Below are positions 1 through 8,012 of a stretch of 64,000 bases of DNA, one piece after another; within the stretch, counting starts at the first letter, position 1, and each line of letters begins with the position of its first letter. Source of the DNA: Tetramitus jugosus (Eukaryota; Protista; Heterolobosea); assembly GCA_937625935.1 (NCBI GenBank), contig OW569370.1, positions 186,001 through 250,000 on the forward strand, given 5' to 3'. The notes beneath the pieces were generated by a model. The model searched no databases. It was not told the DNA's origin and saw only the letters and a list, made by a program, of their open reading frames with translations. Made by a program: the position numbers and the translations under genes.

Positions 1-2089
1 ATATCTGTTGAACAATGACAGTTCACATACCATTGACATTGCCAGAGAATCATTCAAGGTGACGGATGCCAAACTTCGCAAATTTATGAAGCAGGTGAGA
101 GATTCATCGTCTCAAAGCTACCCCGAATCAAGTCTTGTTGGAACCAAGTTTCTTCAAATCAACGATTATCGTGAAGGAATTCTTAATTTTACAATATCAG
201 GTACTCTTGGTTTTAATTTCTATTCCAATATCATTGGTGATATCATTAATTTGATGAATTCAATGATGGAGGATCAAGAAGACCATGGAATAGATGGCAA
301 TGAAGATTTAGTCAATATGTTGAGGATGGTCGAGTTTCAGTACACGACCAAATCAATTGGATCCTTTGTGTTTTCTCAAAAACAATATCCACTGGAGTTG
401 TATCAAGCCATTTCATACCTTATAGCAAGTAGAGATACCCTTCTCGCGTCGGTGGTGCGCTCAATGGATGATAACGAAGAGGAGGTGTATCAACAGATGG
501 TCAATGGAACTCTTCCTGCCATCACTGCAATGGAGTCCTACTTGTCCTCCGATCGATGGAACTTTACAACCACTGGACCACTACCAAGCGTAACAAAATA
601 TTCTGCTATCATGTGGGATTCAGTTACAATGGATCACATCAGAGCGCTCCGATCAGTTCAATCCTTTTTGGAGAAGAAACTCCTGAAGAAGTCCAATGAT
701 ATTATTTCGAAAGGCACCGGAATAATCATATCTATCATTTGTGTTGTCCTCTTCTTCTTCTGCCTTGTGCTGATTTGCTCATCATTGACATCATGCAGCA
801 TCATTGGACCATGGAGAAGATTGAACAAAATGCAAGAAAATGCAATCAGCAAGTTTGTTCCACAACAATTCTTGAGACTCATGAATGTCAAGAGGATCAA
901 TGACATAGAGTTGGGAAAGTTTGTGGAGAGACAGTTAACCATCATGAACATTTCCATTGCTCAGTTCGCCAAGTTGACATCTGGAATGAAACCAGAACAA
1001 ATCTTGCAATTCACCAACTCATACTTTGGTTACATTGGTCCAATCATTCGCAAATATGGATTTGTTCAGAATTACAATGGTGATGGACTTGTTGCATTGT
1101 ATAAGAGCCAAAGGAAAGCATTGTCTGCGAGTGTTGAACTTCAATTGGCAACAAGTGCTTACAACTTGAATGTTGTTTCAAAGAGTGATTTCCCATTGGT
1201 TGAGGTTGGAATATCAGTGCAGACTGGCGCAGTTCTTGTTGCAATTGTTGGTGAGAATGAAAGAATGGAGTGCACCATACTCAGTTCACACCACAAAACA
1301 TCAGCCAAGCTCGATTATTTAATTCAAAAATTGAACTTGAGAATGCTGACCAATACACTAGGAACTGAAGTATCGATCAAAAAATCATTATCTAGTCAGA
1401 TTGCATACAGAATGCTAGGATCGATGGAGGTAGAAACATCTTCTGGTACCCAACTTACGACGGTATATGAGATTTTGAAATCATCAGACAATGCAAAGCT
1501 TCAATCCAGAGATGATCTCAGGAATGCAGTTACACTATTTCAAACTGGACGGTATGCTGAAGCGGAGCCAATCTTTGTTTCGATTGTTAGTGAACTTTCT
1601 GATGATACAGTGAGCAAGTTGTACTTGAGTCGATGTGAACGACTGGTCAACCAAGTGAAACTCATCAGTTTGAATTTAGGTGTTCAGGAGGTCTTGAAAG
1701 ATGATGAACTATTCCATGGATTTGAAGTGTTTTGCCAGCAAGAGTTCAGTGCAGAAAACATTGTTCTTTGGGGTGAGATTGAACAATACAAAGTGCAACC
1801 AGAAAACAAGAGAAGAACCATCGCAAAGAGATTGAGAAGAGAGTATCTGAGTTTGAGTGGACGGAAAACGATCAACATCAATGAGACGTTGAAGGAAGCT
1901 GTTGCGAATGAGATTTTGAAAGAATCTCATGAGAAAGCACCCGCAGCAGAGTTGTTCTCTGACATTCAACATGAACTGGAACTGTTGATGACAGACACAT
2001 GCAACAGATACAAAGCTTCTTCACTCTTCTTTGAGAGCCTTGCAAGATCAAAGTATGCCATCAGAGCACCTTATCTAGACCAATTGTAA
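1..2089 (+). CDS. NIT-like ectodomain / TM / degenerate class III cyclase / TPR-like / RGS protein, paralog 1 (5' end outside window)
   Basis: Colinear with paralogs 2 and 3 but lacks their first TM, so it is 5'-truncated. TM IIISIICVVLFFFCLVLIC; cyclase-like FVPQQFL, YNGDG, IVGENERMECT; RGS FCQQEFSAENI, TINI, LF-DIQ-EL-LLM-DT-NRY. Confidence 0.85.
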   Translation, partial: YLLNNDSSHTIDIARESFKVTDAKLRKFMKQVRDSSSQSYPESSLVGTKFLQINDYREGILNFTISGTLGFNFYSNIIGDIINLMNSMMEDQEDHGIDGNEDLVNMLRMVEFQYTTKSIGSFVFSQKQYPLELYQAISYLIASRDTLLASVVRSMDDNEEEVYQQMVNGTLPAITAMESYLSSDRWNFTTTGPLPSVTKYSAIMWDSVTMDHIRALRSVQSFLEKKLLKKSNDIISKGTGIIISIICVVLFFFCLVLICSSLTSCSIIGPWRRLNKMQENAISKFVPQQFLRLMNVKRINDIELGKFVERQLTIMNISIAQFAKLTSGMKPEQILQFTNSYFGYIGPIIRKYGFVQNYNGDGLVALYKSQRKALSASVELQLATSAYNLNVVSKSDFPLVEVGISVQTGAVLVAIVGENERMECTILSSHHKTSAKLDYLIQKLNLRMLTNTLGTEVSIKKSLSSQIAYRMLGSMEVETSSGTQLTTVYEILKSSDNAKLQSRDDLRNAVTLFQTGRYAEAEPIFVSIVSELSDDTVSKLYLSRCERLVNQVKLISLNLGVQEVLKDDELFHGFEVFCQQEFSAENIVLWGEIEQYKVQPENKRRTIAKRLRREYLSLSGRKTININETLKEAVANEILKESHEKAPAAELFSDIQHELELLMTDTCNRYKASSLFFESLARSKYAIRAPYLDQL

Positions 2090-2299
2090 AAAACTGTACA
2101 TTATACCCATAGGACATTACCAACAGTCCATAAGAATTAAAACTCCTCTCGGCTCAACATTTTATGCGCAGCTACTCTAAGAATAGCAGGACTGTTCCGG
2201 CTCACATCCACAAAAGACAGTCGCACATTTTTCGTTGGAAGCAACACGTCCTTCGTTGCTACCTTGTCCTTTCGATATCGCGATATCACGGCTTTTGAG

Positions 2300-2308
2300 T
2301 GACAGATG
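2300..2308 (+). promoter_or_regulatory. Candidate conserved upstream element TGACAGATG (second copy at 5404-5412)
   Basis: Same 9-mer 137 and 146 nt upstream of the paralog 2 and 3 ATGs, in otherwise unalignable spacers. Confidence 0.3.
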
Positions 2309-2436
2309 AGATTCAGGACTTTAGAGCACGGCGGATTGGACACAGAAATTTTTATGATTACCTGCGAGTATCAACATGTTCAACAGCCAAGTACTCAACA
2401 ACTACTAGACAACAAGAACAAACCCAAGAAAACACC

Positions 2437-4890
2437 ATGATGACAGAAGCTGTTCCAAGTGCCACAGCAACTCACAAAAAGGATCTGGAGCTGTGTGATA
2501 TAGATACACACGGTGCAGAGACTCTGTCGACAGTCAATCATCACAACTCCACAACATCAAGTGATCCATACTCGGATGAGCTGCTCACATTCACTGCCAA
2601 GGGTTTTCAAGGTCTCATTGAAAGAATTCCAATGCCTGTCAAGCTCTTGTCCATGGCGCTCGCTGCACTTGTTGGCATGGTATGTATAGGAGCCTTTTTG
2701 ATTGTGATTCAATCCATTGATATTCGCAAGGCCAATGATGAACGACAGTTCGTTCACATCTCGGTGGCAACGAGCGATACTGTACTATACCTGCAGAGGG
2801 AGAGAGAAACTATAGTTCAATTTCTGAGCGAATCTCAGTTGAATAGTTCGATTGCTATCGCAAAAGAATCATTCGAGACGACGGACCTCAAGCTTAAACT
2901 CTTTGGAGACAAAGTGAAGGGCTTGTCTGCGCAGAATGCTTTTGAAGCAACCCTCATTGAGCTGCAACAACTGAATTCCATACGTCAAGGAATGTTGAAT
3001 TTTACTGTCGAGGGAGAGACAGGTTTCAACTATTACTCCAAATTGATTGACAGCTTTGCGGTGGGGTTGAGTTCGATTACTCGAAGTAGCTCTAGCATTG
3101 AAGGTAGTGACAATTTGGTTAGTATGTTGAGAATAGGCGAGTATCAGTATGCTCTGAGAACGGGAGGAGAGTACCTCTTTGCTCAAAAACAACACTCCTT
3201 AACAGTGTACTATCAGTTGGTATATTACATATCCGCGAGAGATTCCTTATTAAGTTCAGTACTGTATTCCATGAGCCAGACAGAGATAGAATACTATTAT
3301 CAAGCTGTTAATTCCACTAGTCTACTGGCTCAAATGGAAAGCTACTTGACTTCAGATCAATGGAACTTCACTACTACGGGACCCCTTCCAAATGTTACAC
3401 AATTCTCGAAAGATTTGTGGAGTACAACAACGAAGAATCGTCTCCTGGCTTTTCAATCTGTTCAATCGTATCTGACTCAGGGATTGACGAAACAAGCAGA
3501 AGATACTGTTACTCAAGGAACCAGTATTATTGTTGGAATCATCGTAGTTATTCTGTTCTTCTTTTGCGTTGTACTGTGTTGTTCTTCCCTCACATCATGC
3601 AGCATCATTGGACCATGGAGAAGGTTGAACAAAATGCAAGAGATTGCAATCAGCAGATTTGTTCCACAACAATTCTTGAGACTCATGAATGTCAAAAGAA
3701 TCAATGAAATCGAACTGGGAAAGTATGAAGAACGGAAGTTGACCATCATGAACATATCGATGGGAAGATTTGCCAAGTTGACATCTGGAATGAAACCAGA
3801 ACAAATCTTGCAATTCACAAACTCATACTTTGGTTACATTGGTCCAATCATTCGCAAGTTTGGATTTGTTCAGAATTACAATGGTGATGGACTTGTTGCA
3901 TTGTACAAGAGTCAAAAGAAAGCATTGTCTGCAAGTGTTGAACTTCAATTGGCCACAAGTGCTTACAACTTGAATGTTGCTTCGAAGAATGACTTCCCAT
4001 TGGTTGATGTTGGCATTTCAGTTCAATCAGGAACAGTTCTTGTTGCAATTGTTGGTGAGAATGAAAGAATGGAATGCACAATTATCAGTTCTCACACAAG
4101 GATATCTGCGAAGTTGGACAGTTTGATTCATAAGTTGAATCTGAGGGTGTTGACAACTGCTTTAGAAACTGATACGCCAATTCAAAAATCAGTAACCAAC
4201 CAAGTTGGCTTTCGAGCTTTAGGATCGCTCGAAGTGGAAACAGCATCAGGTACACAACTCGTACAGGTGTTCGAGATTGTGAAATCGTCAGATAAAGTTA
4301 AGTTGCAATTGAATCATGACTTCAGCCAAGCAGTCGAATTGTTCCAATCAGGAAGATTTCCAGAAGCTGAACCAATCTTTGCTTCAATTGCAAGTGAGTT
4401 GATTGATGACACAGTGTGTAAGTTGTACTTGAAGAAGTGTGAACAACTGCTTCAACAAGTGAGAATGATGACATCAAACTTGGGAGTTCAAGATATCTTG
4501 AAAGATGATGAATTATTCCATGGATTTGAGGTGTTCTGTCAGCAAGAGTTCAGTGCAGAAAACATTATTCTTTGGGGTGAGATTGAACAATACAAAGTTC
4601 AACCCGAGGCAAAAAGAAGAACCATCGCAAAGAGATTGAGGAAAGAGTATCTAAGCTTGAGTGGTCGTAAGACAATCAACATCAATCAGACTCTGAAAAC
4701 GGCAGTGGCCAATCAGATATCAGATGACCACTCTGGAGCACCTGCGGCGGATCTGTTTTCAGATATTCAAAATGAACTGGAACTGTTGATGACAGACACA
4801 TGCAACAGATACAAAGCTTCTTCACTCTTCTTTGAGAGCCTTGCAAGATCAAAGTATGCTATCAAAGCACCATATCTCGACCAATTGTAA
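2437..4890 (+). CDS. NIT-like / pseudocyclase / RGS 2-TM receptor, paralog 2
   Basis: First ATG (2437) follows an A/C-rich leader; the ORF-track start at 2299 is GTG. TM1 LSMALAALVGMVCIGAFLIVI, NIT-like LYLQRERE, TM2, cyclase-like and RGS motifs. Confidence 0.85.
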   Translation: MMTEAVPSATATHKKDLELCDIDTHGAETLSTVNHHNSTTSSDPYSDELLTFTAKGFQGLIERIPMPVKLLSMALAALVGMVCIGAFLIVIQSIDIRKANDERQFVHISVATSDTVLYLQRERETIVQFLSESQLNSSIAIAKESFETTDLKLKLFGDKVKGLSAQNAFEATLIELQQLNSIRQGMLNFTVEGETGFNYYSKLIDSFAVGLSSITRSSSSIEGSDNLVSMLRIGEYQYALRTGGEYLFAQKQHSLTVYYQLVYYISARDSLLSSVLYSMSQTEIEYYYQAVNSTSLLAQMESYLTSDQWNFTTTGPLPNVTQFSKDLWSTTTKNRLLAFQSVQSYLTQGLTKQAEDTVTQGTSIIVGIIVVILFFFCVVLCCSSLTSCSIIGPWRRLNKMQEIAISRFVPQQFLRLMNVKRINEIELGKYEERKLTIMNISMGRFAKLTSGMKPEQILQFTNSYFGYIGPIIRKFGFVQNYNGDGLVALYKSQKKALSASVELQLATSAYNLNVASKNDFPLVDVGISVQSGTVLVAIVGENERMECTIISSHTRISAKLDSLIHKLNLRVLTTALETDTPIQKSVTNQVGFRALGSLEVETASGTQLVQVFEIVKSSDKVKLQLNHDFSQAVELFQSGRFPEAEPIFASIASELIDDTVCKLYLKKCEQLLQQVRMMTSNLGVQDILKDDELFHGFEVFCQQEFSAENIILWGEIEQYKVQPEAKRRTIAKRLRKEYLSLSGRKTININQTLKTAVANQISDDHSGAPAADLFSDIQNELELLMTDTCNRYKASSLFFESLARSKYAIKAPYLDQL

Positions 4891-5549
4891 ATAAACTGGA
4901 CTGAATCACTGGAAATATGTCGAAGTACGTTCTTACGAGTTGGAAGCATATTGAAATACGTGTTCACCACCTTAACTAATAAATTTTGACCCAAAAAATT
5001 AGAAGTATTCGGATCAACATCGTGATTTGACCCTTCGTATGGTTCAATTCCTTCTTGTTGTTTCGCGTGTTAAAAATGCGGCACATCACAAAGCTCTCGA
5101 GAGAAACCTGCTTCTCTAAGTTGAATCAACTCTTAATGGTCCTTCGTGGCAGTTGTTGTTTGTGCGGTTAAATACTCTCGAGATGAAAGGATCTCCTCCT
5201 TTTGCGGTTCAGATGCTTTAGACATTGGCAGCGAGTCCTTTGCTTGTGCGATCCTTCGGCAAAGGATGAATGAAAGTACTTGCACTGGAGGTTTCGATGT
5301 TGACCCGTATTGGATGTTGTAGCGCAACTCCGCGTGTTTTTCGGGGCACCCTACGGGTCTTTTTAGCCGGGGATTCGCAATACCGATGTAATACAGCGAC
5401 AGATGACAGATGGGTCAACTTCGGAAGGTGCAACAATAGACGAGAAATGTGCGCAAGGAAGCTCTATTGTGTTAATACAAGCCAACACCACATCCATTCA
5501 CAGCACCACTCAAAACAAAACAAAACAAACTAACAAACAACTACCCCAA

Positions 5550-8012
5550 ATGACAGAGCCAACCTCGAACAACAAGGAAAGAGATCTGGAGCTTTGTGAC
5601 ATGGACACTCACGGTGCAGAGACACTGTCCACCTTCAACCACCACAACTCCACAACATCAAGTGATCCATACTCGGATGAGTTGCTCACATTCACTGCCA
5701 AGGGATTTCAAGGTCTCATTGAAAGAATTCCAATGCCTGTCAAGCTCTTGTTCATGGCTCTCACTGCACTCCTAGGCATGGCGTGCATTGCTGCATTTCT
5801 AATCACGATACAATCGATTGAGATCAGGAAGGCCAATCAAGGACGGAAGTTTGTCAAAGTTACGGTTTTGACCGGAGAGACAGTGCTGTACTTGCAACAA
5901 GAGAGAGGAGATGTTATCAATTACTTGAGTGAGTATCAATTAAACAATGACAGTTCAAACAGTATCGAAATTGCAAAGAGATCGTTCATCACCACGAATA
6001 GCAAGATTAGAAGTTTTAGGAGAGAACTGCGAAGTTTATCCACGCAGAGCGTGTTTCGCGATGGTTTGACCCAACTAGAACAATTGGACAATGTGCGTGA
6101 AGGTATATTAAATTTCAATATATCGGCAAATGATGGATTCGATTACTACTACAATGTCATTGTTAGTTTTACTGATGCTTTGAATTCAATGACTGGAGGT
6201 CTCAATACGCTGAATGGCGAAGGGAGCGCAAACTTGATCAATCTTCTGAGGATTATCGAGTATCAGTCCGCGTTGAAAACGGCAGGAGAGTATCTCTTTG
6301 CCCAAAAACAACACTCGTTAGAGTTCTACTCCATAATGACGTCTCAGTTATCTGGTAGGGACTCTCTGTTGGCATCAGTGTTACAATCAATGAATCAAAA
6401 AGAAAGAGACTTCTATCATAAAGCAATCAATGGTACTATAGCTGAACTTTCTACAATGGAGGCCTATTTGACATCATATCAATGGAATTTCACTACGACA
6501 GGGCCACCACCGAACATTACAGAGTATTCGGAGTGGAAGTGGCGCTCTGTGACGAACGATCATATGCAAGCGTTTGAATCAGTTGGATTGTATCTCGCGA
6601 GTGAATTAACGAGAGAAACAAACGCAGTCATATCTGAAGGCACTGGAATAATCGTAGGAATCATTGTGGTTGTCATTTTCTTCTTTATTGTAGTTCTTTT
6701 GTGCTCCTCTCTTACATCATGCAGCATCATTGGACCATGGAGAAGATTGAACAAAATGCAAGAGATTGCAATCAGCAGATTTGTTCCACAACAATTCTTG
6801 AGACTCATGAATGTGAAGAGAATCAATGAAATCGAACTGGGAAAGTATGAAGAACGGAAGTTGACCATCATGAACATATCGATGGGAAGATTTGCCAAGT
6901 TGACATCTGGAATGAAACCAGAACAAATCTTGCAATTCACAAACTCATACTTTGGTTACATTGGTCCAATCATTCGCAAGTTTGGATTTGTTCAGAATTA
7001 CAATGGTGATGGACTTGTTGCATTGTATAAGAGCCAAAGGAAAGCATTGTCTGCAAGTGTTGAACTTCAATTGGCCACAAGTGCTTACAACTTGAATGTT
7101 GCTTCGAAGAATGACTTTCCATTGGTTGATGTTGGCATTTCAGTTCAATCAGGAACAGTTCTTGTTGCAATTGTTGGTGAGAATGAAAGAATGGAATGTA
7201 CCATCATCAGCTCTCACACGAAGGTATCTGCAAAGTTGGACAGTTTGATTCACAAACTAAATCTAAGAATGCTTACTACTGCCTTGGACTCAGATGGAAC
7301 TCTACAGAAGTCAGTGACTAGCCAAGTTGGCTTTCGGTCGTTAGGTTTGATCGAGGTTGAAACATCCTCTGGACCAGAGCTAATCCGAGTCTTCGAAATC
7401 TTGAAGGAGTCTGACAAATTTAAGCTGCATTTTAATCATGACTTCAGTCAAGCAGTCGAATTGTTCCAATCAGGAAGATTTCCAGAAGCTGAACCAATCT
7501 TTGCTTCAATTGCAAGTGAGTTGAACGACGACACAGTCTGCAAATTGTACTTGAAGAAGTGTGAGCAACTTCTTCAACAAGTGAGAATGATGACATCAAA
7601 CTTGGGAGTTCAAGATATCTTGAAAGATGATGAATTATTCCATGGATTTGAGGTGTTCTGTCAGCAAGAGTTCAGTGCAGAGAACATTATTCTTTGGGGT
7701 GAGATTGAACAATACAAAGTTCAACCAGAAGACAAGAGAAGAACCATTGCGAAAAGACTTAGGAATGAGTATTTAAGTTTGAGTGGACGGAAAACCATTA
7801 ATATCAACCAGACATTGAAAGAGACCGTGTCAAAGGAGATTTTGGAATCGAGTAGCGATGCACCAGAACCTGACCTGTTTTCTGACATCCAACGAGAGCT
7901 CGAATTTTTGATGGCAGACACTTGTAACAGATACAAATCATCCTCATTGTTCTATGAGAGCCTTGCCAAGTCACAGTACTCCATCAAAGCCCCCTATCTT
8001 GACCAGTTGTAA
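5550..8012 (+). CDS. NIT-like / pseudocyclase / RGS 2-TM receptor, paralog 3
   Basis: ATG 5550 aligns with the paralog 2 start (MTE...DLELCD). NIT-like LYLQQERG; same architecture. An upstream in-frame ATG exists at 5403. Confidence 0.85.
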   Translation: MTEPTSNNKERDLELCDMDTHGAETLSTFNHHNSTTSSDPYSDELLTFTAKGFQGLIERIPMPVKLLFMALTALLGMACIAAFLITIQSIEIRKANQGRKFVKVTVLTGETVLYLQQERGDVINYLSEYQLNNDSSNSIEIAKRSFITTNSKIRSFRRELRSLSTQSVFRDGLTQLEQLDNVREGILNFNISANDGFDYYYNVIVSFTDALNSMTGGLNTLNGEGSANLINLLRIIEYQSALKTAGEYLFAQKQHSLEFYSIMTSQLSGRDSLLASVLQSMNQKERDFYHKAINGTIAELSTMEAYLTSYQWNFTTTGPPPNITEYSEWKWRSVTNDHMQAFESVGLYLASELTRETNAVISEGTGIIVGIIVVVIFFFIVVLLCSSLTSCSIIGPWRRLNKMQEIAISRFVPQQFLRLMNVKRINEIELGKYEERKLTIMNISMGRFAKLTSGMKPEQILQFTNSYFGYIGPIIRKFGFVQNYNGDGLVALYKSQRKALSASVELQLATSAYNLNVASKNDFPLVDVGISVQSGTVLVAIVGENERMECTIISSHTKVSAKLDSLIHKLNLRMLTTALDSDGTLQKSVTSQVGFRSLGLIEVETSSGPELIRVFEILKESDKFKLHFNHDFSQAVELFQSGRFPEAEPIFASIASELNDDTVCKLYLKKCEQLLQQVRMMTSNLGVQDILKDDELFHGFEVFCQQEFSAENIILWGEIEQYKVQPEDKRRTIAKRLRNEYLSLSGRKTININQTLKETVSKEILESSSDAPEPDLFSDIQRELEFLMADTCNRYKSSSLFYESLAKSQYSIKAPYLDQL

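Follow-up and report, generated by a model that had tools for sequence, protein, structure and literature searches.

Receptor-like membrane proteins that end in a cytosolic RGS domain, with a (self-activating) Gα as its target, are known from Arabidopsis (AtRGS1) and from Naegleria fowleri, which has 28 7TM-RGS proteins (PMC9283941). A second group of membrane proteins, the NIT-cyclases of animals (NIT-GCs; PMC7400543) and bacteria, has the order TM, NIT, TM, class III cyclase. The NIT-ANTAR nitrate sensor NasR (4AKK) is cytosolic and has an RNA-binding output. The class III fold can also be used for binding or regulation without the full catalytic set, as in P. aeruginosa 6YII. In mammalian adenylyl cyclase and soluble guanylyl cyclase, a degenerate second site keeps this fold for binding or regulation, and one competent site remains. 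In receptor guanylyl cyclases, the kinase-homology domain is a pseudoenzyme relay between the membrane and the output.

We analysed a 64,000-nucleotide window of the genome of Tetramitus jugosus, a soil/groundwater protist, which contains three adjacent tandem paralogs of ~820 aa that are intronless and transcribed. From the N- to the C-terminus, the paralogs consist of a cytosolic motif, TM1, a NIT-fold ectodomain, TM2, a cyclase-transducer helix, a class III cyclase-homology domain (CHD), a helical hairpin and an RGS domain. These proteins would share off-switch coupling with the 7TM-RGS proteins, but they have two TM helices instead of seven, an extracellular NIT bundle as the sensor, and a transducer helix, dead cyclase and hairpin between the membrane and the RGS domain. 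Their topology is that of the NIT-cyclases, including one encoded on contig C42 of the same genome, and NIT-domain cyclases were their nearest ESM Atlas clusters. In the NIT-cyclases, however, the catalytic residues are present and the RGS domain is absent, whereas the array proteins combine a dead cyclase with an appended RGS domain. Use of the class III fold without a full catalytic set is shared with 6YII; the mammalian cyclases differ from the array proteins in their one competent site, and none of these inactive CHDs works as a transmembrane relay for an RGS output. The kinase-homology domain is an analogy only, being unlike the array proteins in both fold and output. No published description of such NIT/dead-cyclase/RGS receptors was found in the literature.

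Layout and transcription of the tandem array

The three-paralog receptor architecture, first noted in a preliminary description of this DNA, was confirmed, and all of the motifs quoted there were found in frame. Paralog 1, which had been described as truncated inside its ectodomain, is cut by the window edge alone and is an intact 820-aa ORF in the genome (L003:1558-4020). ATG 2437 is the likely start of paralog 2, the mechanical ORF from GTG 2299 being probably too long, and ATG 5550 is the likely start of paralog 3. An in-frame ATG upstream of the latter (5403) would add 49 residues, which are unconserved, and the RNA contigs of paralog 3 start at ~5600-5720. Soil metatranscriptome contigs, one oligo-dT library among them, covered paralog 2 and part of paralog 3. 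None of these RNA contigs lay over the spacer 5016-5597, although a DNA-type run does cover it. Gene conversion was detected between paralogs 2 and 3, so the apparent conservation of their CHDs is inflated. The features of the array are listed in Table 1.

Table 1. Features of the three paralogs (window coordinates).
Feature	Position	Strand	Evidence or remark
Paralog 1, 820 aa	1..2089	+	gene start 374 nt 5' of window (G000:C27:185627)
Paralog 1, part inside window	1..2089	+	residues 126-820 + stop
Paralog 1 transducer helix + pseudo-cyclase	797..1486	+	
Paralog 1 degenerate codons	Ser 953-955, Asn 1070-1072, Ser 1286-1288, Lys 1295-1297, Lys 1307-1309	+	
Paralog 1 RGS	1694..2059	+	Pfam RGS E 3e-14; contact residues kept
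Paralog 2, 817 aa	2437..4890	+	Pfam; RNA contigs from 2397-2428 covering gene
Paralog 2 NIT ectodomain	2722..3513	+	Pfam NIT E 8e-13; family alignment
Paralog 2 transducer helix + pseudo-cyclase	3601..4290	+	
Paralog 2 degenerate codons	Ser 3757-3759, Asn 3874-3876, Ser 4090-4092, Arg 4099-4101, Lys 4111-4113	+	
Paralog 2 RGS	4498..4863	+	Pfam RGS E 6e-15
Paralog 3, 820 aa	5550..8012	+	ORF from ATG 5550
Paralog 3 cytosolic N-terminal segment, then TM1	5550..5822	+	pre-membrane motif ELL..KG..GL.ER.P.P.KL
Paralog 3 NIT-fold ectodomain	5823..6635	+	Pfam NIT E 4e-17; AF2; Foldseek
Paralog 3 NasR R50 equivalent	Arg 5904-5906		
Paralog 3 NasR R176 equivalent	Lys 6276-6278		
Paralog 3 TM2	6636..6722	+	hydropathy windows, residues 358-378
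Paralog 3 juxtamembrane cyclase-transducer element	6723..6845	+	IIGPWRRLN..QE.AI.[KR]FVPQ.FL
Paralog 3 pseudo-cyclase	6846..7412	+	class III CHD fold
Paralog 3 CHD, changed codons	Ser 6879-6881 (metal Asp1), Asn 6996-6998 (Lys), Ser 7212-7214	+	
Paralog 3 CHD, changed codons, transition state	Lys 7221-7223 (Asn), Lys 7233-7235 (Arg)	+	
Paralog 3 CHD, kept codons	Asp 7008-7010 (metal Asp2), Arg 7188-7190	+	
Paralog 3 helical hairpin, CHD to RGS	7413..7619	+	AF2 helices
Paralog 3 RGS	7620..7985	+	Pfam RGS E 8e-16; RGS4 alignment
Paralog 3 RGS4 equivalents	S85 7674-7676, N88 7683-7685, N128 7800-7802, D163 7917-7919, R167 7929-7931	+	

Ectodomain, transducer helix and degenerate cyclase domain

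All three paralogs gave Pfam NIT matches (E 4e-18 to 8e-13). The motif LYLQRERE or LYLQQERG is in frame. The ectodomain is bracketed by two hydrophobic segments and contains five of the eight N-glycosylation sequons. NasR was the only significant PDB match (Foldseek E 2e-6, TMq 0.81) of the AF2 model of the paralog 3 ectodomain (pLDDT 91.9, pTM 0.90), and the two have in common the fold and the LQxER motif with the R50 equivalent, which bears out the NIT-like ectodomain proposed earlier. The columns of the pre-membrane motif of paralog 3 were invariant or near-invariant in family alignments, and TM1 was placed by hydropathy. Only one half of the nitrate pocket shows conservation: 43 of 48 sequences keep the R50 equivalent, whereas the R176 position is occupied by R in 15, by K in 14 and by another residue in 19. 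In place of E175/R176 of the NasR pocket, the array proteins have a hydrophobic residue and K/R/K across the three paralogs, so the ligand need not be nitrate.

Within the family, conservation peaks in the transducer element, at 46.5% mean pairwise identity; the CHD reaches 26% and the RGS domain 27%. In paralog 3, the transducer helix can be overlaid on the transducer regions found in 6FHT, 5M27, 7YZI and 6R3Q (for the element, see PMC5995499).

Whereas the Pfam NIT and RGS matches were strong, those to Guanylate_cyc were marginal (19.6-25.3 bits against a cut-off of 21.9, with 25.3 for paralog 1). The cyclase fold is intact in the AF2 cytosolic model (pLDDT 89.9), which matches Cya2 (Z 19.6) and also CyaB and bPAC (Z ~19). 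The CHD motifs in frame are NISIAQF or NISMGRF, NYNGDG, and SSHHKTSAK, SSHTRISAK or SSHTKVSAK. Residue mapping against the solved cyclases Cya2 (2W01) and bPAC revealed that the first metal Asp is replaced by Ser, the Lys/Glu by Asn, the substrate Asp by Ser, the transition-state Asn by Lys or Arg and the transition-state Arg by Lys, with the second metal Asp (GDG) retained. The signature is therefore S-N-D-R-S-K/R-K as against the canonical D-K-D-R-D-N-R, with five of the seven positions lost, and the mapping agrees with the earlier reading that all three paralogs lose the same residues. For the CHD, comparison of paralog 1 with paralogs 2 and 3 gave a dN/dS of 0.11-0.14. An independent trio of dispersed genes gave 0.04-0.06 for this domain and 0.21-0.27 for the ectodomains. 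With values of 0.04-0.14, strong purifying selection acts on the dead CHD.

A degenerate CHD could also be an ATP- or GTP-binding sensor, the receptor then integrating ligand and nucleotide state and acting through its RGS domain. Although compatible with a relay, this reading seems unlikely to us. The CHD could still bind a nucleotide because the second metal Asp and the phosphate-contacting β4 Arg are retained, the latter in 64 of 74 relatives (86%), and the structure of a class III cyclase-like protein limited to ATP binding (6YII) matches the CHD model (Z 12.3). However, family members differ freely at the base-specifying and the ribose/transition-state positions, which speaks against a conserved pocket, and the conserved Arg lies within a family-specific G-E-N-E-R motif and may be structural.

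The CHD of paralog 3 is followed by a hairpin of three helices (238-249, 253-266 and 271-293 of the cytosolic model), which is also found behind the CHD of the NIT-cyclase on C42, a protein that has no RGS domain. The hairpin had been labelled TPR-like, but it matched Pfam TPR_19 at E = 0.17 only; this label is weak, whereas the rest of the proposed order (TM, NIT, TM, cyclase fold, RGS) holds.

RGS domain and predicted docking on Gα

Pfam RGS was detected in all three paralogs (E 3e-14 to 8e-16), with EFSAEN and TININ in frame as previously noted. Alignment to RGS4 in 1AGR showed that S85, E87, N88, N128, D163 and R167 are all kept, and the paralog 3 RGS model superposes on the same structure (VIA Z 13.8, rmsd 1.5, 113 residues). 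The RGS-Gα prediction suggested in the preliminary description gave a canonical predicted dock: the complex with a native Gα scored 0.77, compared to 0.00 for the best of three controls. Of 78 solved complexes 51 attained that mark, as did 2 of 108 mismatched pairs. Three runs shared at least 70% of contacts, with a partner pLDDT of at least 82, and the predicted interface places switch I, II and III of Gα against EFSxEN, TININ and DTxNR of the RGS domain. This result may stem from the predictor having memorised solved RGS/Gα structures. The genome has at least 20 Gα loci and at least 119 RGS loci, and docking on one native Gα singles out no partner among these at least 20 Gα proteins.

The RGS domain might serve to dock on Gα or as an effector module, with no useful GAP activity, like the RGS-homology domains of GRK2, axin or SNX type, in which case Gα-GTP would form the input or the protein would be a scaffold. 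PMC3971589 states that RGS domains are not always GAPs, and in the intact relatives P0017 and P0024 the RGS domain could put the cyclase under Gα control. Nevertheless, the residues that define a GAP-competent R4-type RGS domain are all kept here and in 84-91% of the 74 relatives, no structure matches better than RGS4 as seen in its Gα complex, and a dead cyclase leaves Gα no other output to regulate. We consider such a pure docking role decidedly unlikely in the array.

Family context and proposed signalling

Across the 74 CHD-RGS relatives, the catalytic positions drift freely and the RGS contacts are near-invariant. A full catalytic set was found in 3 of the 74, whereas 71 of 92 plain cyclases in the same alignment, a working control for residue scoring, read D-K-D-R-D-N-R; 5% of the relatives retain the transition-state Asn and 24% the first metal Asp. 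The array genes fall within a 62-row clade (SH-aLRT 97) with 0 members that have the catalytic set. The metagenomic proteins P0017, P0024 and P0032 are catalytically intact NIT-cyclase-RGS proteins in a short-branched clade near the family base, with profile matches across all 816 positions and Pfam NIT, Guanylate_cyc and RGS domains. They have architecture and family in common with the array genes but retain D-K-D-R-D-N-R.

It is highly unlikely that the CHD still aids cyclic nucleotide synthesis, whether through non-canonical chemistry or by pairing with a competent subunit. Class III cyclases do act as dimers and heterodimers, in which one protomer gives both metal Asp residues and the other gives Lys/Asp/Asn/Arg; mycobacterial Rv1900c is active with Asn in place of Lys, and its CHD (1YBT) matches our model (Z 17.2). 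A candidate partner would be the one NIT-cyclase of the genome with a near-canonical D-S-D-R-D-N-R, encoded at C42:358591-360606. The paralogs, however, lack residues from both half-site sets, so no heterodimer would contain a complete site, and rescue by an active subunit, raised in the preliminary description, appears unlikely. Moreover, the catalytic positions differ among close relatives, a pattern of lost constraint, and Guanylate_cyc falls from 74-77 bits in the intact relatives to ~20 bits here. That the array genes are decaying, functionless duplicates, for which the in-frame TAA in the RGS domain of the dispersed family member C36:373293 could speak, is already contradicted by the three intact ORFs, by dN/dS of 0.04-0.25 in every domain, by coverage with RNA contigs and by a near-identical, intact metagenome ortholog of paralog 2 (P0001).

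We suggest that each paralog is probably a two-TM receptor-GAP, with the RGS domain as the sole remaining catalytic output and the ex-cyclase as a dimeric signal relay. The extracellular NIT double four-helix bundle would bind a small ligand, possibly an oxyanion, and the signal would pass through TM2 and the conserved transducer helix to the CHD. No longer synthesising cAMP or cGMP, the CHD would be retained as a dimeric relay that the hairpin joins to the canonical RGS domain, so that ligand occupancy would set how fast Gα is switched off. Within this scheme, we infer dimerisation and GAP activity, as well as the ligand, its control of the output and the direction of that control. No literature precedent was found for a conformational change of a CHD dimer that alters RGS activity. 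The interpretation put forward in the preliminary description is supported in the parts that can be checked in silico, namely the NIT fold, an intact cyclase fold with lost catalysis, purifying selection and a canonical predicted RGS dock. The logic would be that of the plant and Naegleria receptor-RGS proteins, on a bacterial-type sensor-cyclase chassis, and the array suggests an undescribed route linking an outside signal to G-protein shut-off.

Organisation and transcription of the tandem genes

The window (G000:C27:186001-250000) comes from a eukaryotic assembly of 26.35 Mb in 56 contigs, and its first 8 kb hold three ORFs on one strand. The sequence motifs quoted in the preliminary description are all present in these ORFs. 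Its statement that paralog 1 is truncated was rejected: the gene only appears truncated because the window edge cuts it, and the whole 820-aa ORF is intact. For paralogs 2 and 3, the ATG codons listed below are most likely the starts; with these the N-termini of the paralogs align.

Coordinates of the genes, transcripts and related features (window positions unless a locus or contig is named)
Feature	Position	Remark
Paralog 1	1-2089 (+); whole ORF L003:1558-4020	start 374 nt ahead of the window
Paralog 2	2437-4890 (+)	most likely start ATG 2437
Paralog 3	5550-8012 (+)	most likely start ATG 5550
RNA contig start, paralog 2	~2397	
RNA contig starts, paralog 3	~5600-5720	
RNA contigs X7 + X12	2397-3621 and 3882-4949	paralog 2
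RNA contig X14	3595-4046	paralog 2
Spacer	5016-5597	
Pre-TM1 motif, paralog 3	5685-5745	residues 46-66
First tract shared by paralogs 2 and 3	3620-4076 vs 6742-7198	98.4% match, longest exact run 209 nt
Second tract shared by paralogs 2 and 3	about 4300-4560 vs 7420-7680	
Joint in DNA contig X1	4095 to 7608	3512 nt skipped
L004, dispersed family member	G000:C36:373293-375722	in-frame TAA
L008, NIT-cyclase	G000:C42:358591-360606	70-nt intron
L035, G-alpha	C34:253662-254624	
G-alpha used for complex prediction	C9:542239-543210	intronless
PBP_like_2 ORF	L052:7014-8264	417 aa

The RNA evidence came from soil metatranscriptome contigs, which give neither levels nor strand; three libraries contributed, including an oligo-dT one. 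On paralog 2, collinear RNA contigs were found at 95-99% identity, with the gap between X7 and X12 filled by X14. RNA contigs covered parts of paralog 3, and those on both genes were without joints. The spacer was without any contig from these soil metatranscriptomes, yet was spanned by the DNA-type run X1. Since the RNA contigs are collinear and jointless and leave the spacer uncovered, it follows that closely related strains transcribe these genes and that the genes lack introns there. A reading of the three paralogs as pseudogenes was ruled out by dN/dS and by the RNA contigs. In the dispersed family member L004, an in-frame TAA lies within the RGS domain (TDTF*RFKSS, where the others read TDT..RYK); the stop marks either recent pseudogenisation, a truncated allele or a sequencing error.

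Groundwater and soil metagenome runs contain the stretch as well. Among the metagenomic proteins, P0001 and P0027 are 98% identical to paralog 2 and paralog 1, respectively, and P0010 and P0011 lie on very short tree branches next to the family copies on C45 and at C27:454675, respectively. These near-identical proteins, together with the groundwater and soil runs, therefore indicate that those habitats commonly harbour this organism or strains very close to it.

Sensor ectodomain and cyclase-homology domain

The NIT domain (PF08376) was detected by Pfam in all three paralogs (E 4e-18 to 8e-13; 49.7-67 bits, cut-off 24.9). The ectodomain model, built from an alignment of 48 sequences (pLDDT 91.9, pTM 0.90), has nine long helices, and its only PDB matches at E <= 0.001 were to the NIT-ANTAR nitrate sensor NasR (4AKK chains A and B; E ~2e-6, TMq 0.81, probability 1.00). 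A phmmer search of the ectodomain against the PDB returned nothing; the family profile also recovered NasR by sequence (E 3.7e-5). The Pfam hits, the double four-helix-bundle fold and the match to NasR uphold the NIT-like ectodomain of the preliminary description. The NIT region lies between two hydrophobic segments and contains five of the eight N-glycosylation sequons, so it fits an extracellular sensor.

For NIT domains, "two conserved arginines" have been named (PMC7400543). The pocket residues named for NasR are E175 and R176 (PMC7496416), and two interface arginines, NasR R50 and R176, were proposed as nitrate binders (PMC7496416, PMC7400543). Using the PDB-chain numbering offset, we placed R50 in LQCER and E175/R176 in GQERALG. 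The R50 equivalent is present in 43 of 48 family members. At the R176 position, paralogs 1 and 3 have Lys and paralog 2 has Arg; across the family the residue is Arg in 15, Lys in 14 and another in 19. The E175 equivalent is hydrophobic. Identity among the paralogs is 46-50% in the ectodomain, where synonymous sites are saturated or nearly so, and 81-91% in the cyclase-homology domain (CHD). Because the R176 equivalents and the ectodomains diverge while the CHD stays similar, it is plausible that the paralogs differ in ligand specificity.

The family copy at C27:454675 has as its immediate upstream neighbour an ORF with a PBP_like_2 domain (PstS-type solute-binding; E 2e-14), and a MatE transporter lies farther upstream; the PBP_like_2 neighbour possibly points to an oxyanion as ligand or to a binding protein as partner. 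On the cytosolic side, before TM1, all three paralogs carry the motif ELL..KG..GL.ER.P.P.KL, in which K65 (paralog 3 numbering) is invariant among 48 members and G52, E58, P61 and L66 reach 90% conservation or more. This motif may pack on the transducer helix.

Profile matches to Guanylate_cyc (PF00211) straddled the Pfam cut-off of 21.9 bits, at 25.3, 20.4 and 19.6 bits for the three paralogs. A genome-wide PF00211 scan at E <= 1e-5 had none of the seven family genes among its matches, and BLASTP of the CHD against one canonical cyclase of this genome gave no alignment. The class III fold is nevertheless present in the cytosolic model (48 sequences; pLDDT 89.9, pTM 0.81), which matched Cya2 (VIA; Z 19.6, rmsd 2.7 over 182 residues; Foldseek E 1e-10) and also CyaB, bPAC, CyaC and Rv1900c. 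The N-terminal helix of the model was included in cyclase matches to 6FHT, 5M27, 7YZI and 6R3Q; this helix is the cyclase transducer element, which couples sensors to class III cyclases (PMC5995499).

The catalytic positions were mapped by phmmer alignment to Cya2 and bPAC, and the losses described earlier were borne out in all three paralogs. Each lacks one of the two metal Asp, the substrate-specifying pair (Lys/Asp or Glu/Cys type) and the transition-state Asn and Arg of a competent class III cyclase, whereas canonical cyclases in the same genome keep all seven catalytic residues. The paralogs descend from NIT-cyclases and, judged by these residues, would not be competent cyclases.

Catalytic positions of the CHD in paralogs 1-3 and in the family
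Position	Canonical residue	Paralogs 1-3	Canonical residue kept (n=74)
Metal Asp 1	Asp	Ser, all three	24%
Substrate-specifying 1	Lys or Glu	Asn	38% (Lys)
Metal Asp 2	Asp	Asp, kept	47%
Beta4 Arg	Arg	Arg, kept	86%
Substrate-specifying 2	Asp	Ser	23%
Transition state	Asn	Lys or Arg	5%
Transition state	Arg	Lys	16%

The dead CHD may conceivably still bind nucleotide, as it retains the second metal Asp and the beta4 Arg, and a precedent exists in 6YII, a P. aeruginosa class III cyclase-like ATP-binding protein. The preliminary description had also considered the CHD as the partner of an active subunit. In the class III mechanism, both metal Asp come from one protomer and the Lys, Asp, Asn and Arg from the other. 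Because residues of both half-sites are missing here, any heterodimer would have two incomplete sites, which, with the drift across the family, makes such a partnership unlikely.

The helices between the CHD and the RGS domain had been called TPR-like, for which the profile gave no support (TPR_19 E 0.17, 12.7 bits, cut-off 25). This linker is a helical hairpin, and the same hairpin follows the CHD of an RGS-less NIT-cyclase on C42, the two exons of which were searched separately. That gene, L008, is alone among the NIT genes of the genome in having no RGS; it has a GTAAGT...TAG intron within the CHD and the near-canonical signature D-S-D-R-D-N-R, with Ser at the Lys position. It is likely a relative of the ancestral state.

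Selection and catalytic drift across the family

Between paralog 1 and paralogs 2 and 3, dN/dS in the CHD was 0.11-0.14 at dS 0.8-0.9. A second, independent set of three copies, located on C36 and C45, gave 0.04-0.06 in the CHD and 0.21-0.27 in the ectodomains. By this measure of selection, the dead CHD is still needed. Mean pairwise identity among 48 members was highest in the transducer helix (46.5%), followed by RGS (27%), CHD (26%) and NIT (15%). The paralog 2/3 pair taken alone overstates constraint, because the two genes share tracts of gene conversion, which evens out the transducer/CHD and the beginning of the hairpin/RGS part but leaves the ectodomains to diverge. The tract edges are sharp, with 98-100% nucleotide identity inside and 57-75% in the flanks. 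The joint in the DNA contig X1 is probably an assembly cross-over within these tracts.

Comparison across the family argues more strongly still for lost catalysis. A profile search over 1.84 billion cluster representatives recovered many full-length relatives. From these and the genome's own copies, 74 sequences with CHD, hairpin and RGS were placed in one HMM alignment. The full D-K-D-R-D-N-R signature was found in only three (P0017, P0024 and P0032), compared with 71 of the 92 plain cyclases run alongside as the alignment control. The six RGS contact positions were kept in 84-91% of the 74. P0017 and P0024 score 74-77 bits against Guanylate_cyc alongside NIT and RGS, so NIT-cyclase-RGS proteins with intact catalytic residues exist. 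The family members whose source was checked came from JGI, Logan and ENA assemblies, and one cluster from NCBI. The ESM Atlas gave no large cluster of this architecture, the nearest entries being animal NIT-GCs, all with scores <0.9.

In a CHD tree made by a quick method and rooted on four cyclases of this genome, the intact forms fell in a short-branched clade of nine rows near the family base. The window genes fell in a clade of 62 rows (SH-aLRT 97) with zero intact members. This topology fits, without proving the order of events, one early catalytic loss followed by drift at the catalytic positions. With intact and dead versions in one family, the transition is therefore testable. The metagenome contig that carries intact P0017 (L051, JGI, 99 kb) is gene-dense, intron-poor and eukaryotic. 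The degenerate P0012 is assigned a contig of identical length (99,309 bp) and does not occur within 10 kb of P0017; if the two are on the same contig, dead and intact forms occur together in one organism.

RGS domain and a proposed two-TM receptor-GAP

The RGS domain (PF00615) was detected by Pfam in all three paralogs (E 3e-14 to 8e-16; 53.8-58.9 bits, cut-off 23.9). Its fold matched that of G-alpha-bound RGS4 in 1AGR (Z 13.8, rmsd 1.5 over 113 residues). The intact RGS motifs noted previously, EFSAEN and the Asn of TINI, are present. In the alignment to RGS4, each paralog retains every one of the contact residues S85, E87, N88, N128, D163 and R167 and has Thr at S164. The RGS domain is possibly a non-GAP scaffold; the conservation of the G-alpha contact residues argues against this.

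The RGS of paralog 3 was modelled in complex with the core of a native G-alpha from an intronless gene, with a score of 0.77 (best of three controls, 0.00), a mark attained by 51 of 78 solved complexes and by 2 of 108 mismatched pairs. Three prediction runs had at least 70% of contacts in common, with partner pLDDT of at least 82. The predicted interface sets switch I (RKTTGIVQ), switch II (GGQRNERKKW) and switch III against EFS..N, TININQT and ..DT.NR, which in the model is the geometry of 1AGR. The prediction supports binding of the RGS to the G-alpha switch regions; such a pass may also reflect solved complexes of these families that the predictor had learned, and it does not single out the true partner from the 20 or more G-alpha.

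The genome encodes at least 20 G-alpha, at least 119 RGS and at least 45 cyclase-domain loci, a G-protein toolkit that is very large for 26 Mb. One G-alpha, L035, appears to be without the switch I catalytic Arg (NAVKTIGV), as judged by eye against the G-alpha-i1 motif. The repertoire is like that reported for Naegleria fowleri, which has self-activating G-alpha and 7TM-RGS proteins acting on them (PMC9283941).

The evidence best supports a two-TM receptor-GAP that acts as a dimer, in which we infer ligand control, GAP activity and dimerisation, the last because class III cyclases generally form dimers (PMC5995499). A ligand would act on the NIT domain, and the signal would pass through TM2, the transducer helix, the ex-cyclase dimer and the hairpin to the RGS domain, the end of the path being faster GTP hydrolysis on G-alpha. 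Receptors of the 7TM-RGS (AtRGS1) type have seven TM helices before the RGS; the paralogs have only two hydrophobic segments, so they are not members of that class and would share with it a working likeness, that of receptor plus RGS. Our literature search found no report combining NIT, RGS and cyclase; earlier mention of the architecture, Naegleria included, is possible. Pfam-based pipelines label these proteins "class 3 adenylate cyclase" or report NIT and RGS alone, as the source annotation of relatives shows, and both labels are misleading.

Receptor-coupled RGS proteins are the main known G-protein control in plants and in some protists with self-activating G-alpha. To our knowledge, all those described to date are seven-transmembrane proteins. 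Taking the evidence jointly, we tentatively propose, at slightly less than even confidence, a widespread, hitherto undescribed class of receptor-GAPs in protists of soil and groundwater, which would number at least about 60 clusters at the 50% identity level. Its sensor-cyclase-RGS ancestor would have lost catalysis once, and the CHD would long have been kept purely as a transmembrane transducer. An extracellular small molecule would thereby set the off-rate of heterotrimeric G-proteins without a GPCR or a second messenger. If true, this would be of interest for G-protein signalling, pseudoenzymes and protist sensing: it would offer a clean case from nature of an enzyme domain turned into a signal relay, and a second, unrelated receptor chassis for RGS, made of a bacterial-type two-TM sensor and a cyclase transducer.
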